Positions 29,865-35,218 of a stretch of 64,000 nt of DNA are shown here, one piece after another. Both the position numbers and the translations under genes were made by a program. Under the pieces are notes generated by a model. The model saw only the letters and a list, made by a program, of their open reading frames with translations, did not search any database and was not told the DNA's origin. Source of the DNA: Amoebophrya sp. A120 (Eukaryota > Protista > Dinoflagellata); NCBI GenBank assembly GCA_905178155.1, contig CAJINV010000015.1:1850920-1914919 (forward strand). The letters are read 5' to 3'. Every line of letters starts with the position of its first letter. Positions within the stretch are counted from its first letter, which is position 1.

Positions 29865-32800
29865 ATGGCCGACCTCCCGCTCCGCATCGGCTATTCGCAG
29901 CCGCGAAACTTCGCGCAATGCCAGCCGGTGTTACCGAGCAACGACCCAAGCGCCAGTTTGTACGAGCAGTCGGTGGAGAATTTGGACGACTTCTATCCAG
30001 GAAAAAACACCCATCCCCATCCACTTTTTGCATGACAAATAGTGGATTTTATGCATGTTTTGCATGACAAATTGGATGGGGGTGGGTGTTTTTTCCGGGA
30101 TAACTTCCGCACCGGTTTAGGCTCCATGATGTTCGCGTCGACGACGATGACGAAGTCGAATTTTCTATCAAAAGAAAAAAGTTCGTCACGATCACTCATG
30201 GGCATTTTTGCAATACAAAATTGTCTGTCATGCGTAAAAATGCATCACAGACACAGCCACACTTCATAAGGGATTTCCCTAGTGTTTCTGCAATACAAGC
30301 AGAAGTTGTGATGCTAAAAAAATTTGTAATGCAAAGCCTGCAACTTAGTGACTGTGACAAACTTTATTTTTCTCTCCATATTTTCTCGGCGCCGGTGCTG
30401 CTGGGAATAAAAAGTCGAACTACAAATCTTCCGGAGGAGGTGGACACAGCACCTCATCCAGCACTACAGCGTCGAAATCTTTACTGCAGCGACCAGCGAC
30501 AGTAGACCACCAGGTGACAAGTGCCAGCGCAGCAAACAATAAAATCGACCTGGAGAGCGAGATCTATTCGCAACTTTTCGCGGAAACCGCAAGTGCATTT
30601 AACTCATCAAGGTCGAATAAAATGAGCAACAAGACTCGAGGAGGCGCAACAAGTAGTGTGAGGACCGCGTCAGAAACAGCTGCGACTAAGCGACCATCCA
30701 CTTCTGCCGCCGACGGGGCAACGGAAACCACAAAAGGGAAGAAAAAGGCCACCATCAACGCCCCACTACCGGAGTCAACATCGTCCTTGACAAAGGATTT
30801 GAGTCCGAGTTTCAAAAACACCGAGCCGTTTCGCTGCGACGCGAGGATCACCTCGAGATCTACCTTCGACGAGTACTATCCTGTGCAAAAGTATCGCGCT
30901 CGTAGTAAAATTGCAGTCCTGCATTACAAATTCTTTTCGTAAGGTAAATCTGCACGACAGATTTCACTTCTCATGCTGTCTGAGGAAATTTGTAATGCAT
31001 TTATACGAATGCGATACTTTTGCAATGCATAAGTACATCAAACAATCCAACGAGGCGAAAAGACTCGGGATCTCCCGGAAGGAGGTCGAAATCGAGCAGA
31101 AACTGCGGAAGAAACTGACTTACATCCAGAAACAGCAACGGTTTGATTCCTTAGTCAAGTCCGACGGGACCTTCAAAAGACAAGTTTGGGCGTCCATGAT
31201 CAAGGAGGGGTTGATCGGGTACAATAAGACGAGTAAAAAGGCGCAGGCGGAAATGGGGGCCAGAGACGCTCTATGCATTGCAAAAGTATCGCACTCGTAT
31301 GAATTGCAACTATGCATGACAAACTAGTATGTTAATACTTGAATCAGCATTACAAATTCCAACTTGAACTTTCTTCTTGAGAAAATTTATCATGCAATTT
31401 AATCGTAGTGCGATACTTTTGCCATGCATACGCGCAGTCTTTCCTCCAATTACTCGTCCGGCGATTCGGCACCATCATGCGTGCGTGGCGGAACGGGTTA
31501 GATTTGGACGGGAACGGGAGGATTAGTTACTACGAGTTCTGCAAAGCGGCGAGGGCGATCGGGTACGAGTCGAGTTTGCGGCAGCTGTGGAATGATTTGA
31601 ATGACAACGATGATAAAGCGTTCATCACGCTAGACGAGCTAGACGTGGACACCTTCAACCGCATCAACTACTTCAACGACATTCTGACGAGGAACTTCAG
31701 TTCTTTGAAAGAGGCCTGGCTCTTCTTCGACATTGACAAGCAGAACCAAATTTACGAGAAACAGTTCCGAATTGCGCTGGTATCCACAGTATAATTCCCG
31801 TACACGTACAAGTGCTGTCTCTCTCTCTGCATGGCAAAACTCGGCGTCGATCGTAGTTTAGCATGACAAGTCTCGTCGCACTCCCGATTGGGGAAATTTG
31901 TCATGCGTCTTGTACATCAGGTGCGGGAAATTTGTATTGCATAGCTGGTGGACAAGTTGAATTTCGACACGGCGAAGTACGTATCAAATGCAAAAATGTC
32001 TGGGTCTGGCAGAATGCAGATTTTTGTCATGCTGTTTTTGCATGACACAAAATGTCTGTCATGGAAGCCCTAGCATCACAGATTTCGAGAAGCCTCCGCG
32101 TTGCTTAATCCGCATGACAAACGTCGCCCCATTTCGGTGACAGGAAATGGGCGGCTTTTGCTGTCTATGCATGAGAGATTTGTCTGTGTTGTGTTATTCG
32201 CATCACAAGTTCGCACCCTTCCAGACCCAGACATATTTGCAATGCATAGTACGATTTGAAGAAACTGTATGAAGATCTGGACTACGACGGCAACGGGTTT
32301 TTGACCTTGGATGATTGGCTGTTCCTGAAGAAATGGGTGACCAGCAACGACTGCAAAATGCTGGAGGAGTTCAGGAAGGTATAGATTCTTGTGTGTTTTG
32401 CGCATAGCAAACCGCCTTTTCCATGCACGGTTTTGCATGACAAATTCAAAAAATCACACAACCCCAGGTCCTCCGCTCGAAATATTTCAAGCCGACCGAC
32501 GCGTTCTACAAAGTTTTCGATGTCAACAGGAACGGCTCCATCGACCCATTGGAGTTCGTTGAGGGGTGCAATAAGTTGAAACTGGAGAAACACATCACCG
32601 AGATTGCCATCAATCCAAGACGCCTCTTCGAACTCCTAGACGCCGACGAGTCGGGGGAGATTTCCGTTTCGGAGTTTATCAAACTTTTCACGGCTACCGA
32701 ATCCTCGGAGAACAAAGTAACCGCGGTGGACGAGCACAACCCTCTGCCCGCGATCCAGAAGGAGATCCAGTCGAAATTCGGGTGTATTGTGGATTTGGAG

Positions 32801-35218
32801 GAACTGCAACAACCATTGAAAAAATCCTACCAGTTGTACGACGCGGTATTCCGCCGGTTGGAGGAAACGGAAAGAACAGATTTGCACGAGCTCATCAACT
32901 ACCAGTGGACGGGGCCGGACGAGAGTTTGATGAGCAGAAAATCGAGGTCGAATAATTTGTTCGCAGCTGACGGAACAAATAAGCCGACAGGAGAAAACAA
33001 AGAGCATGTCAGGAAGATCTACTCGGCTGACTCGATCCAAGACATCGCGGATTTGGATTTGTTACTGCAACAGGCGGAGCTGGCGCAGGCGTTTTTGAAA
33101 CGGGCTTTGTTGAAGGAAGAAGTGCTGAAAGAGAATGGGATAATGACAACAGTTAGTACAACGAGTGGAGCTGCAAGTAGAAGCAGCACTAAAACCTCCT
33201 CCAGTCCGGCCGACGACCCGTCAAAAAATTTCGACGCGCAGGAGTTCAAGAAGAAAATCGACCAGATTTGGCCGTCAAAGACGACAACGAAGTCTTCTTC
33301 TCTGCTCAAGTATGCACTGCAAAAGTATCGTAAAAGGTACAAATACATATACAAATTTCCTCAGCATGGGAGCTGCATTTTGTCATGCTGTTTTACCATA
33401 AAAACAAGAGTTGTCATGCATAGTTGCAATTAGTACGAGTGTGATACTTGTTTTGCAATGCATATCAAGCACCCTTTTCAAGAAGCGTTTGATCCGGCGA
33501 TAAAGTCGAAGAAGCGGTGCATCGAGAAAGCGAATTACAAATACGAAGCGACGTTATCCACAGTAAATTTCCCGTACTCGTACAAGTGTGGTTTCTGCAT
33601 GACAAAACTTGCGTGGCTACCGTTTTAAGGTTTAGAGAACGACAGGGACGCCCAGCCCTTAGCTTCCCAACATGACAAAACTTGCACTCAATCCTAGTCC
33701 AGCATGACAAGTTGGGCTCTGCAAGGTAGCGAAATTTGTCATGCATTTTGCACATGTACAGGAAATTTACATTGCATAGACGTATGGGAAAGCGAATAAG
33801 TTCAGGCGGATTCGGGACGTCGCGAGGATTTCCCTGCACTTCAACAAATGTAGGGAATTGTTGTCCGCGTTGAAGTATGAATTGCAAAAGTATCGTACTA
33901 TTATAAATTGCATTACAAATCTCCTCAGCGTGAGAAATAAAATTTGTAATGCGGTTTTAGCTAAGGAAGGCGATTTGTCATGCATGTCTGCAATTAGAAC
34001 GAGTGCGATGCTTTTGCAGTGCATATGAAGCAATTAGACGAGTTCTACAACGTGATCTCCATCGACAACCGGATGAAGTATCCGACGGCGCTGGGGTGGA
34101 GAGACTTCGCCGCGTTAGTGATGATTGAATTGCCGAGTGAAAACCAGAAGAGCCCCGAGATGAAGAAACACGTCTGCGAGATACAGTACAACTAAAGGGA
34201 TGTGTTGATGTTTGCTGATGTCGAACGCTTTTTGTGATGCAACTTTTTGAGAAGAAAATAAAAATCTTGCCGTATGTTCTTCAACTGGCTGCGCCAGAAC
34301 CTGTGATGCAAAAAATCTTATGATCCAAAGAAACCGACTTATCAGGCTCCAACTGACTCCCTTTAACGTCGCGCGGAAGCAGGCCCACCAATACTACCGC
34401 ACTTTGCGCGAGAAAATCCCGTCATTAGTCCAGTCGAAACAGGCCGACGCTTTGCAGGAGGCGATTCTCGACAGTCTGCAAGCCGTGCGGAAATCGGAAT
34501 TCTGTTCCCACGTGACCGTTATGAATTGCAAGAGCATCGTACTAGTAGTAATTGCATTACAAATTACCTCAGCATGACAAATGGAATTTGTCACGCTGTT
34601 TTACCTTGGGATGTAGATTTGTAATGCACAATTGCAATTACTACGAGTACGATACTTTTGCACTGGATGACCGTCGGCGTCGATATGGACCGTTCGAAAG
34701 TGTGGACCCAGCCCTGGTACCAAAACCCACTGGTGTTGGAGGGCAGGGTCGGATCACGACGGGAAAAGATGAAGAACCAGAAAGCGCTGCAAGACCCGGA
34801 AAAAAGCGCGAATAACTCTCCGTTACTCAAAAACCAGTTCCCGAAGAGCAGACCGGAACTCCCGATCGTTTCCATGCGGACCGATTGGATGCGGGGAAAC
34901 ATGCACGGATCCTTTCCGCCGCCGGTACCAGATCTACGGGATAACCGGCCGTGGCTCCCGGCGGGCGGGTTGTTGAACGGGTTGTTTACCAATTTGACCG
35001 CAAATCACGAGATGGAGGACTATGTCACGGAGGGGGAACGGAACAAAATGGTGGAGAAATTGGGAAATTCACCGCCGGGGAATAAACTGTCTGGGGGGAA
35101 GAAGGGCGGAAATGAAGTCCCCGTTGGCGAGGCGAATTTTGATGAAAGGGTGAAAATGTTGGAAAAATCTCGGAAGAATCACGAGAAGAGAAAGCGGGAG
35201 TACTTGCAGAGTCGGTGA
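29865..35218 (+). CDS. Multi-EF-hand protein fused to a RelA/SpoT-synthetase-like nucleotidyltransferase domain, 13 exons
   Basis: Removing 10 introners and 2 GT-AG introns gives one open frame; EF loops DLDGNGRISYYE (31501), DYDGNGFLTLDD (32280), DVNRNGSIDPLE (32519), DADESGEISVSE (32639); then IKSKKRCIEK...IRDVARISL...DNRMKYPTALGWRDF...HVCEIQLQL...AHQYY. Confidence 0.85.
29994..30102. mobile_element. Introner family E (109 bp)
   Basis: Family E TIRs; TSD acttc/acttc. Confidence 0.95.
30166..30380. mobile_element. Introner singleton (215 bp)
   Basis: tatcaaaagaaaaaagttcgtcacgatcact / agtgactgtgacaaactttatttttctctccata; TSD ttttc/ttttc. Confidence 0.85.
30877..31031. mobile_element. Introner family A (155 bp)
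   Basis: Family A TIRs; TSD agtac/agtac. Confidence 0.95.
31272..31430. mobile_element. Introner family A (159 bp)
   Basis: Family A TIRs; TSD cgctc/cgcgc. Confidence 0.9.
31781..31943. mobile_element. Introner family F (163 bp)
   Basis: tatccacagtataattcccgtac / gtgcgggaaatttgtattgcata; TSD gctgg/gctgg. Confidence 0.92.
31982..32248. mobile_element. Introner family B (267 bp)
   Basis: Family B TIRs; TSD gtacg/gtacg; interior inverted relative to the 4974 copy. Confidence 0.95.
32379..32467 (+). other. Canonical GT-AG intron (89 nt) containing the introner motif gcatgacaaa
   Basis: aag|gtatag...ccccag|gtc joins EEFRK|VLRSKYF in frame. Confidence 0.8.
33311..33464. mobile_element. Introner family A (154 bp)
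   Basis: Family A TIRs; TSD tcaag/tcaag. Confidence 0.93.
33555..33778. mobile_element. Introner family F (224 bp, about 73 bp longer than the 40804 copy)
   Basis: tatccacagtaaatttcccgtac / gtacaggaaatttacattgcata; TSD gacgt/gacgt. Confidence 0.93.
33876..34025. mobile_element. Introner family A (150 bp)
   Basis: Family A TIRs; TSD tgaag/tgaag. Confidence 0.95.
34186..34345 (+). other. Canonical GT-AG intron (160 nt)
   Basis: ca|gtacaa...tatcag|g joins HVCEIQ|LQLTPF in frame. Confidence 0.8.
34520..34669. mobile_element. Introner family A (150 bp)
   Basis: Family A TIRs, right end ATG; TSD accgt/accgt. Confidence 0.92.

Follow-up and report, generated by a model that had tools for sequence, protein, structure and literature searches.

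A diverged RelA/SpoT-superfamily synthetase domain joined to predicted EF-hands in the plastid-less parasite Amoebophrya

Here we describe a gene on the plus strand (positions 29865-35218) of a 64,000-nucleotide stretch of DNA from the dinoflagellate Amoebophrya sp. A120 (assembly GCA_905178155.1, contig CAJINV010000015.1, positions 1,850,920 to 1,914,919 of the forward strand); we refer to the whole stretch as the window and count positions from its first letter. The protein carries predicted Ca2+-binding EF-hands, with four canonical loops and two degenerate ones, and, downstream of these, a diverged synthetase (SYNTH) domain of the RelA/SpoT (RSH) superfamily that is assigned, by its sequence affinities, to the RelV/Tas1/EAS-like branch of small synthetases. 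A previous reading based on sequence only had proposed a fusion of EF-hands with a RelA/SpoT-synthetase-like domain, and we find homology to RSH synthetases at the level of the fold as well as at the level of sequence profiles. To judge from the conservation of its motifs, the protein may well be an active cytosolic, Ca2+-controlled pyrophosphokinase that makes (p)ppGpp and/or (p)ppApp, a reading to which we assign a probability of roughly 55%. The RSH superfamily and Ca2+-activated RSH proteins are already known; the new element is a eukaryotic subfamily that lies under the detection limit of Pfam, has a RelV/Tas1-like affinity and N-terminal EF-hands, and is found in a parasite without a plastid.

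The coding pieces of this eukaryotic gene switch frame every few hundred bases, and its structure was delineated with two Logan contigs, X1 (3908 nt) and X4 (3874 nt), that come from two samples of one study. These contigs are placed on the window from 29792 and 29772, respectively, to past 35400, with 12 segments skipped in each, and yield an in-frame open reading frame (ORF) of 13 exons and 3309 nt (1102 codons) that runs from the ATG at 29865 to the TGA at 35216-35218; the exons are free of stops, and each of the 11 codons split by introns is a sense codon. The public runs compared with the stretch contain about 59% of its sampled words, which is the share that a spliced copy would contain; no reads of the raw-read RNA runs X8 and X9 fell on it. 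Given that exons 11 and 12 correspond to a single genomic locus in the 115.5-Mb assembly (paralog search), the contigs represent spliced RNA rather than a retrocopy. The EF-hand and synthetase parts thus are joined, as had been supposed, in a single transcript contig in each of the two samples, and the spliced peptide written out in the sequence-only reading is the same as the exon translations. With this and the homology described below, neither of the outcomes named in advance as refuting that reading was observed. The four introns named in that reading, at 33311, 33555, 33876 and 34186, are all present, but the gene has 12 introns, not four. The last of the named positions is identical to ours, and the other three correspond to introns starting at 33306, 33550 and 33871, the offset being a 5-bp direct repeat that makes the junction ambiguous. 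It is these introns that hide the SYNTH domain from an ORF scan: three non-canonical ones with a 5-bp direct repeat at their ends (33306-33464, 33550-33778 and 33871-34025) and a fourth of the GT..AG type (34186-34345).

In the searches and structure predictions, intact orthologs stood in for the spliced protein of the window, the exons of which were searched singly. An exhaustive phmmer search with exon 8 retrieved an ortholog from Amoebophrya sp. A25 (P0002, 1046 amino acids; CAD7940242.1), which is approximately 70% identical to the window protein over this exon and is the best full-length homolog, as well as the partial proteins P0001 (an MMETSP transcript), P0003 and P0004, and the more distant P0052, P0058 and P0061, which have the same layout as the window protein. 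Further members, including P0155 and P0151-P0154, came from later searches. The window exons align to the members of the family without gaps, and the architecture that combines EF-hands with a SYNTH-like domain is present in at least five full-length homologs. Homolog searches by region and by profile returned about 15 relatives, all of them unnamed, and did not connect the family to RSH proteins that have a name; the ESM Atlas provided leads only, namely, unnamed clusters and one cluster with PF04607 (score 0.92). Because Pfam does not recognize its domain and introner-type introns conceal it from ORF scans, the A25 ortholog has remained an "unnamed protein product"; the identifier of the A25 gene was not found in the supplement of PMC6176090.

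A helix from the end of exon 8 and the products of exons 9-12 together make up a diverged synthetase domain of the RelA/SpoT superfamily, an identification that follows from three independent lines of evidence: comparison of a profile with sequences, structure, and bridging relatives. A profile of the family (A2) compared with PDB sequences produced a sole significant match, to RelP/YwaC (6fgk_A, E 3.8e-5), in an alignment that covers all five synthetase motifs. Comparison of the family (A3) with a set of secreted small synthetases from Vibrionaceae (A4) using hhalign gave a probability of 99.1% with an E of 1.4e-18 over 164 columns at 26% identity, in an alignment that takes in the helix before beta-1. 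The A4 set is the RelV/VpEAS cluster, to judge by its motifs and by the presence of the Aliivibrio fischeri protein Q5E423_ALIF1 in the supplement of PMC12691689. The profile of these RelV-like proteins has its best PDB match in Tas1 (E 4e-9), over the IKSRER...K / DLAR segment that is present in the window protein as well. The bridging relatives come near the threshold of PF04607 (22.6-25.3 bits against a cut-off of 27, model positions 3-110). One bacterial contig (L013) encodes two tandem 260-amino-acid proteins with signal peptides that score 22.9 and 25.3 bits, and proteins of this type are also found in Photobacterium species and in A. fischeri. These tandem copies (L013:2683-3483 and L013:3737-4519; also on L023-L028), which are diverged and of the RelV/EAS type, are located next to a DeaD-type helicase gene. 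Single exons 9-13, which at 27-55 amino acids are too short for such searches, gave no relevant match in Pfam or NCBIfam.

The SYNTH fold of RelQ, RelP and RelSeq is a mixed beta-sheet with helices on its flanks. For the present family, the fold was computed on the homolog P0004, which is 50-74% identical to the window's exons. The AlphaFold2 model has a mean predicted local distance difference test (pLDDT) score of 82.6, with values above 90 in the SYNTH domain. When this model was compared with known structures using Foldseek, the top 38 matches were all RSH synthetases (RelQ, RelP, Rel, RelA and SpoT) with E of about 1e-5 and a probability of 1.0, and Tas1 and SaEAS appeared lower in the list (E of about 2e-3). 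VIA aligned the model with RelQ (5ded) at Z 14.5, with a root-mean-square deviation of 2.1 Å over 142 residues, and with RelP (6fgk) at Z 13.4; the structural scores are Z 10.8 for Tas1, 10.0-10.3 for CapRel and 9.6-9.7 for SaEAS. In a scan of 48,161 representative PDB chains that was independent of Foldseek, residues 168-366 were matched by RSH synthetases alone, that is, by RelP, RelQ, Rel, Tas1, SpoT, CapRel, SaEAS and RelA; the remaining rows were EF-hand matches to residues 1-90, a region that matches EF-hand pairs at Z 10-12. The structural matches begin at helix alpha-1, from model residue 168 onward.

In the window, helix alpha-1 of the SYNTH domain (..LLLQQAELAQAFLKRAL) is encoded at 33047-33109, within exon 8. 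Exon 9 (33465..33549) contributes beta-1 and the start of alpha-2, with the motif DPAIKSKKRCIEKANYKY, and aligns to the RelP segment VKSFESIVNKLMRK that contains K80, S84, K88 and K92 of SaRelP; its corresponding residues are Lys (33503-33505), Arg (33515-33517), Lys (33527-33529) and Lys (33539-33541). Exon 10 (33779..33870) encodes beta-2 with RIRDVARISL, which includes the Asp that is the putative Mg2+ ligand (33816-33818) and, three positions further on, an Arg (33825-33827). Exon 11 (34026..34185) spans beta-3, the G-loop, beta-4 and the start of beta-5, and includes the Asn-Arg pair (34067-34072), PTALGWRD with GWRD at 34094-34105, a His (34169-34171) and the Glu of E-I-Q (34178-34180); the Gln codon of E-I-Q (CA|G, 34184-34185|34346) is cut by the intron 34186-34345. 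The rest of beta-5 and helices alpha-4/5 are in exon 12 (34346..34512; LQLTPFNVARKQAHQYYRTLREKIP), with the Ala-Arg pair at 34371-34376, a His at 34386-34388 and a Tyr at 34395-34397.

Conservation was assessed in 12 database homologs that are 29-52% identical to the reference, P0004. The elements D-P..K...R...KA..KY, D..R, NR...P..LGW.D, H..E.Q and AR...H..Y are invariant in all 12 and are all present in the window; in P0004 numbering, D246, E311 and Q313 are invariant, and so are A177 and Q181 in the linker and alpha-1. The order of motifs on which the sequence-only reading had relied (K..S..K, D..R, P..GW., E.Q and H..Y) therefore is not due to chance, being invariant in the 12 homologs and aligned with the catalytic residues of RelP. 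Functional roles are known for SaRelP, where D107 and E174 are Mg2+ ligands, K80 and K88 contact phosphates, S84 contacts the alpha-phosphate, H190 contacts the ATP ribose, R78 and R112 stack on the adenine, and Y151 of the G-loop stacks on the acceptor base (PMC5794853). Mapping through the A2-RelP alignment reveals an invariant Asp at the position of D107, invariant Glu and Gln in the E-x-Q motif of E174 (VpEAS E186), invariant Lys at K80, K88 and K92, and an invariant His at H190. An invariant Arg occupies the position of S84 and another that of G110 (D+3), for which no role is described, and the ATP-binding basic residue R91 is variable. At the position of Y151 the family has Trp, so that the aromatic character is kept, and the G-loop reads GW[RM]D, with Asp in place of the Ser of GYxSxH. 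The D..R spacing is the one reported for SaEAS (D121/R124) and for Apk1 (R330) (PMC12691689). Invariance of the D, E-x-Q, K and H..Y residues at 29-52% identity is what one would expect if the active site works.

The predicted calcium-binding side of the protein begins to take shape in exon 5 (31435..31775), which contains one canonical EF-hand loop (31501-31536, DLDGNGRISYYE) and the two degenerate loops (31603-31638 and 31729-31764), and continues with a canonical loop in exon 7 (32248..32376; loop at 32280-32315, DYDGNGFLTLDD) and with a pair of canonical loops in exon 8 (32466..33305; loops at 32519-32554 and 32639-32674, with the sequences DVNRNGSIDPLE and DADESGEISVSE), a canonical loop being taken as 12 residues with ligands at positions 1, 3, 5 and 12. 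The sequence-only reading had rightly counted four clear loops and two degenerate ones. Pfam recognizes EF-hand_6 (PF13405) in exon 5 at 28.3 bits (cut-off 25) and EF-hand_1 (PF00036) in exon 8 at 40.6 bits (cut-off 25.4); in exon 7, the match to EF-hand_7 (E 6e-4) is below the threshold for the 44-amino-acid piece alone. The EF-hand loop adjacent to the linker is canonical in every homolog that has EF-hands. Beyond the EF-hand pair, exon 8 encodes a conserved helical linker and a low-complexity insert, in addition to SYNTH helix alpha-1.

Upstream of the first EF-hand, exon 4 (31032..31270) encodes a conserved helical segment of about 45 amino acids (RFDSLVKSDGTFKRQVWASMIKEGLIGYNK, 31106-31243), which is kept in P0001, P0002, P0052, P0058, P0061 and P0155 and corresponds to a helix (residues 276-318, pLDDT 77-91) in the model of P0002; this segment, which all full-length homologs have, might serve as a pseudo-EF partner or in autoinhibition. 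Further upstream, exon 1 (29865..29988; contigs join 29988 to 30103) starts with MADLPLRIGY..., and its N-terminal motif also opens the orthologs P0001 and P0002, whereas exons 2 (30103..30159) and 3 (30380..30871) are rich in Ser, Thr and Ala and little conserved. The boundaries of exons 2 and 3, like those of exon 7 and of the 32-nt exon 6 (31944..31975), are contig joints. No Pfam match was obtained in exons 2-3 or in exon 13. Hydropathy analysis (Kyte-Doolittle) detected no hydrophobic N-terminus and no signal-like or transmembrane segment in the window's exons: the maximum 15-residue mean is -0.19 in exon 1, and no exon exceeds 1.16. Exon 1 thus lacks a hydrophobic segment, and no signal peptide was found. 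The earlier reading had seen no HD hydrolase domain, and Pfam detects none in the window's exons or in the orthologs; moreover, there is no room for it because the first approximately 270 residues of the full-length ortholog are predicted to be disordered (residues 1-271 of P0002, pLDDT of about 28). The ordered part of P0002 (residues 272-880) consists of one long helix, the EF-hand array, the helical linker and the SYNTH domain, and the model of this full-length ortholog contains no further ordered domain. In the 1102-amino-acid window protein, the disordered N-terminal region comprises about 300 amino acids.

The C-terminal tail is encoded by exon 13 (34668..35218, including the TGA) and contains the motifs DMDRSKVWTQPW, FPKSRPELP and PVPDLRDNRPWLP. 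It is mostly disordered by prediction, with low pLDDT in the P0002 model, and its motifs are kept in P0002, P0004, P0052, P0058, P0061, P0155 and P0151; they probably represent linear motifs for docking or regulation. The forms shared with distant homologs are DMDRSKVWTQPW, FP.KRP.LP and P.VPDLR.NRPW.P (34676-34720 onward), for which there was no family match.

Patterns of family-specific peptides retrieved 20 loci from metagenomes, and in several of these a SYNTH-like relative is combined with modules other than EF-hands. One (L006:2611-4140; PF04607 23.9 bits) is fused to a Ras/Roc GTPase, another (L011:8-1858) contains three Myb repeats, a third (L020:720-2399) is fused to a Ser/Thr kinase, and two more (L019:2070-5498 and L021:204-3194) contain TPR and Myb; for the kinase and TPR-Myb loci, tblastn support is weaker, with E from 2e-7 to 2e-8. 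These observations suggest that fusions of a SYNTH-like domain to sensor modules form an undescribed family in marine protists. The genome that contains the window also has a second, more diverged SYNTH-like gene (L034, which is G000:C1:7955672-7958869; ORF L034:61-1770). Its product has a hydrophobic N-terminus and the C-terminal motifs SDYLRARVVF, VKNKMKK, HIAELQLLL and EHRYYE and lacks the GWRD G-loop; it is matched by profile A2 (E 2.2e-4) and, in hhalign, by the RelV/VpEAS-type set (80.6%, E 1.3e-5), with no match in Pfam.

Among characterized proteins, RelV/VpEAS, the Sec-exported synthetases of Vibrionaceae that form cluster B of PMC12691689, are the closest sequence relatives found. 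They share with the window's family the A..AQ..L helix, (P)G[IV]KS..R...K, [RT]D.AR, NRF..P..G[YW]RD, H.AE[IV]Q L.L and H..Y. In contrast to the window protein, which has 1102 amino acids, is cytosolic by sequence and carries an N-terminal EF-hand array, they are single-domain proteins of about 260 amino acids with a Sec signal peptide, and the aromatic residue of their G-loop is Tyr rather than Trp; no relative of the GW[RM]D type turned up when 185,579 prokaryote genomes were scanned for the pattern. RelQ and RelP (SAS1/SAS2 of Firmicutes) are the best structural matches but are only about 17-21% identical, and relative to them, the family has DxxR in place of DxxGxR and does not keep R78, R112 or the His of GYRSLH. 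The type VI effector Tas1/Apk1 and SaEAS have the motif IKSRERA..KI...DLAR in common with the window's family, and D121/R124 of SaEAS have the same D..R spacing; these are secreted bacterial toxins or exo-enzymes of very high turnover that make (p)ppApp or a mixture and lack EF-hands.

The logic of the architecture, EF-hands fused to an RSH synthetase domain, is that of CRSH (RSH4) of plants and green algae, in which synthesis is Ca2+-dependent in vitro (as summarized in PMC6881373 and PMC3153485). CRSH, however, is a long RSH protein with a degenerate HD domain and C-terminal EF-hands that is targeted to plastids and scores in Pfam RelA_SpoT, whereas the window protein has no HD domain, N-terminal EF-hands and a RelV/Tas1-like SYNTH domain, and belongs to a plastid-less lineage, no genetic trace of a plastid having been found in A25 or A120 (PMC7789003). 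On these grounds (no HD domain, EF-hands at the N-terminus, a different SYNTH branch), orthology with plant CRSH was rejected, in line with the independent assembly proposed from the sequence. Two RSH4 proteins of CASH algae with N-terminal EF-hands (Avilan et al. 2019, PMC6881373) are a precedent for EF-hands N-terminal to an RSH module, and the "divRel" small synthetases of Dictyostelium, some fungi and diatoms (Atkinson et al. 2011, PMC3153485) are a precedent for a eukaryotic stand-alone, synthetase-only RSH. By their descriptions, both are set apart from the present family: they were found with RSH hidden Markov models, for which they are thus sufficiently canonical, and either belong to the RSH4 clade of plastid-bearing algae or are single-domain proteins.

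If the protein is the Ca2+-controlled pyrophosphokinase that we favor, it would transfer the beta,gamma-pyrophosphate of ATP to the 3'-OH of a purine nucleotide, so forming (p)ppGpp and/or (p)ppApp, and the EF-hand array would keep the synthetase off at resting Ca2+ and free it when Ca2+ rises. A rise in Ca2+ may then elicit, in the cytosol of this eukaryote, a nucleotide signal like that of the stringent response. Such a protein would parallel plant CRSH by convergence, with a SYNTH domain from a different branch of the superfamily and the opposite domain order. The SYNTH type involved is one whose activity in bacteria is high enough to require export or neutralization (PMC12691689); RelV-type enzymes are toxic when free in the cytoplasm (PMC12691689). 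The sequence-only reading had taken GWRD as an argument against ppGpp as the product, and this holds only in part. The Asp of the G-loop is no argument against ppGpp because the characterized GYRD-bearing Vibrionaceae relatives, VpEAS and VcRelV, make (p)ppGpp only (PMC12691689), whereas Tas1, of the same branch, makes (p)ppApp.

Several observations weigh against an active pyrophosphokinase of this kind. No family member reaches the threshold of Pfam RelA_SpoT (the best E, 0.18, comes from one of 18 alignment rows), and a six-frame scan of the genome found no PF04607, a weak negative; a second such scan, which proceeds exon by exon and thus is again a weak negative, found no (p)ppGpp hydrolase domain of the HD_4 type (PF13328). 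The adenine-stacking R78 and R112 of SaRelP are replaced by Gly/Ala and Ser/Ala, respectively, and the His of GYxSxH by a variable residue. The change from Tyr to Trp in the G-loop is family-wide, and we found no characterized enzyme with Trp at this position. Furthermore, the lineage presumably lacks the classical organellar targets (PMC7789003), and the product cannot be read from the sequence because enzymes of the same branch differ, Tas1 making (p)ppApp, RelV/VpEAS (p)ppGpp and SaEAS both.

Some of these observations can be accommodated by a pseudo-enzyme without catalytic activity that, as part of a Ca2+-binding scaffold protein, would do no more than bind a nucleotide or a partner, as the score under the Pfam threshold and the loss of the ATP-base contacts, with no counterpart of R78 and R112 of RelP, would suggest. 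We consider this improbable, given that the D, E-x-Q, lysine and H..Y residues are invariant among proteins that are only 29-52% identical to P0004 and that the D..R spacing is that of the active SaEAS and Apk1. To a similar degree, it is doubtful that the acceptor is an RNA 3' end, with the protein acting on tRNA-CCA like the pyrophosphokinases CapRel and FaRel2 and bringing about a Ca2+-triggered shut-down of translation. CapRel is indeed among the structural matches (Z 10.0-10.3), the branch is toxSAS-like, with Tas1 as the best PDB match of the RelV-like profile, and the loss of the adenine-stacking arginines, together with Trp and Asp in the G-loop, leaves room for another geometry of the substrate; nevertheless, the closest sequence relatives, RelV/VpEAS, are nucleotide-specific (PMC12691689), and RelQ and RelP match at Z 13-14.5 compared with about 10 for CapRel.

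It is somewhat easier to imagine, although still not likely, that the synthetase is active but is not gated by the EF-hands, which would instead serve localization, partner binding or structure, with activity being constitutive or regulated otherwise, for example, through the tail motifs. The degeneration of two of the six loops, the strong conservation of the tail motifs, and the existence of relatives without recognizable EF-hands (P0152-P0154) or with Ras/Roc, kinase or TPR-Myb modules all are compatible with this alternative. However, every EF-bearing homolog has a canonical loop beside the linker, the variety of sensor-plus-SYNTH fusions suggests that the N-terminal module is an input, synthesis by plant CRSH depends on Ca2+ (PMC6881373), and the toxicity of free RelV-type enzymes argues for tight control (PMC12691689). 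Finally, that the likeness to RelA/SpoT is coincidental, or that the EF-hand and C-terminal parts belong to separate genes, retains virtually no probability and is refuted by the results: although no single exon matches RelA_SpoT, the hhalign value of 99%, the VIA Z of 14.5 and the restriction of the matches in 48,161 chains to RSH synthetases contradict coincidence, and the single spliced contig with a single ORF, along with the same architecture in at least five full-length homologs, contradicts separate genes. A chance motif match, separate transcripts and a hidden N-terminal HD domain were all rejected.

A broader and more tentative proposal, which we hold to be possible but for the present rather less than probable, is that the Ca2+-controlled pyrophosphokinase is part of an organelle-independent, cytosolic alarmone signaling in Amoebophrya and in a wider range of marine protists, of which only metagenomes and metatranscriptomes give evidence, with a RelV/Tas1-like module wired to eukaryotic sensors. 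Under this proposal, a Ca2+ spike, for instance, at host entry or sporulation, would lead to (p)ppGpp or (p)ppApp in the cytosol of a eukaryote with neither a plastid nor a recognizable HD hydrolase, and the sensors would be the EF-hand array in the protein described here and a Ras/Roc GTPase, a Ser/Thr kinase or TPR-Myb modules elsewhere.

The introns that interrupt the gene are themselves informative. Only two of the 12 are of the GT..AG type, namely, 32377-32465 (with the cut shifted by 2) and 34186-34345. The other ten are non-canonical, with direct repeats of 5-7 bp across both boundaries, except for one with a single base, and most of them have terminal inverted repeats with 13-28 matching bases. 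This repeat architecture matches the introner elements described for Amoebophrya A25 and A120 (PMC7789003). One terminal inverted repeat (TGCAAAAGTATCG...) is common to the introns 30872-31031, 31271-31434, 33306-33464, 33871-34025 and 34513-34667, and a second (..ATCCACAGTA.A.TTCCCGTAC.CGTACAAGTG) to 31776-31943 and 33550-33778; with two such groups among its introns, the gene has been struck repeatedly by at least two families of introners. The maxima of contig depth lie over intron sequence, for example, at 31992-32182, which is what multi-copy elements should produce. Within the 22 kb surrounding the gene (window 21132-44118), all ORF pieces of at least 200 amino acids are on the plus strand, a bias that fits the unidirectional gene clusters reported for Amoebophrya (PMC7789003).

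In eukaryotes, synthesis of (p)ppGpp is known from plastid RSH proteins, to which a few unplaced "divRel" proteins can be added, and animals have the hydrolase Mesh1 and no known synthetase (PMC3153485, PMC6881373, PMC10107265). Our literature searches found no paper that combines ppGpp or alarmones with Amoebophrya or Syndiniales. Here we describe a plastid-less alveolate parasite that expresses an intact-looking RSH synthetase domain fused to a predicted calcium sensor, the domain being of the RelV/Tas1 branch, whose bacterial members are exported or serve as toxins. If the enzyme is active, it would link Ca2+ signaling to alarmone chemistry in the cytosol of a eukaryotic cell, and if the proposal of alarmone signaling is true, a dedicated synthetase for such a messenger would be on record for the first time from a source other than bacteria and plastids. 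To judge by the relatives that are joined to GTPase, kinase and Myb modules, eukaryotes may employ this enzyme family more broadly than has been described.

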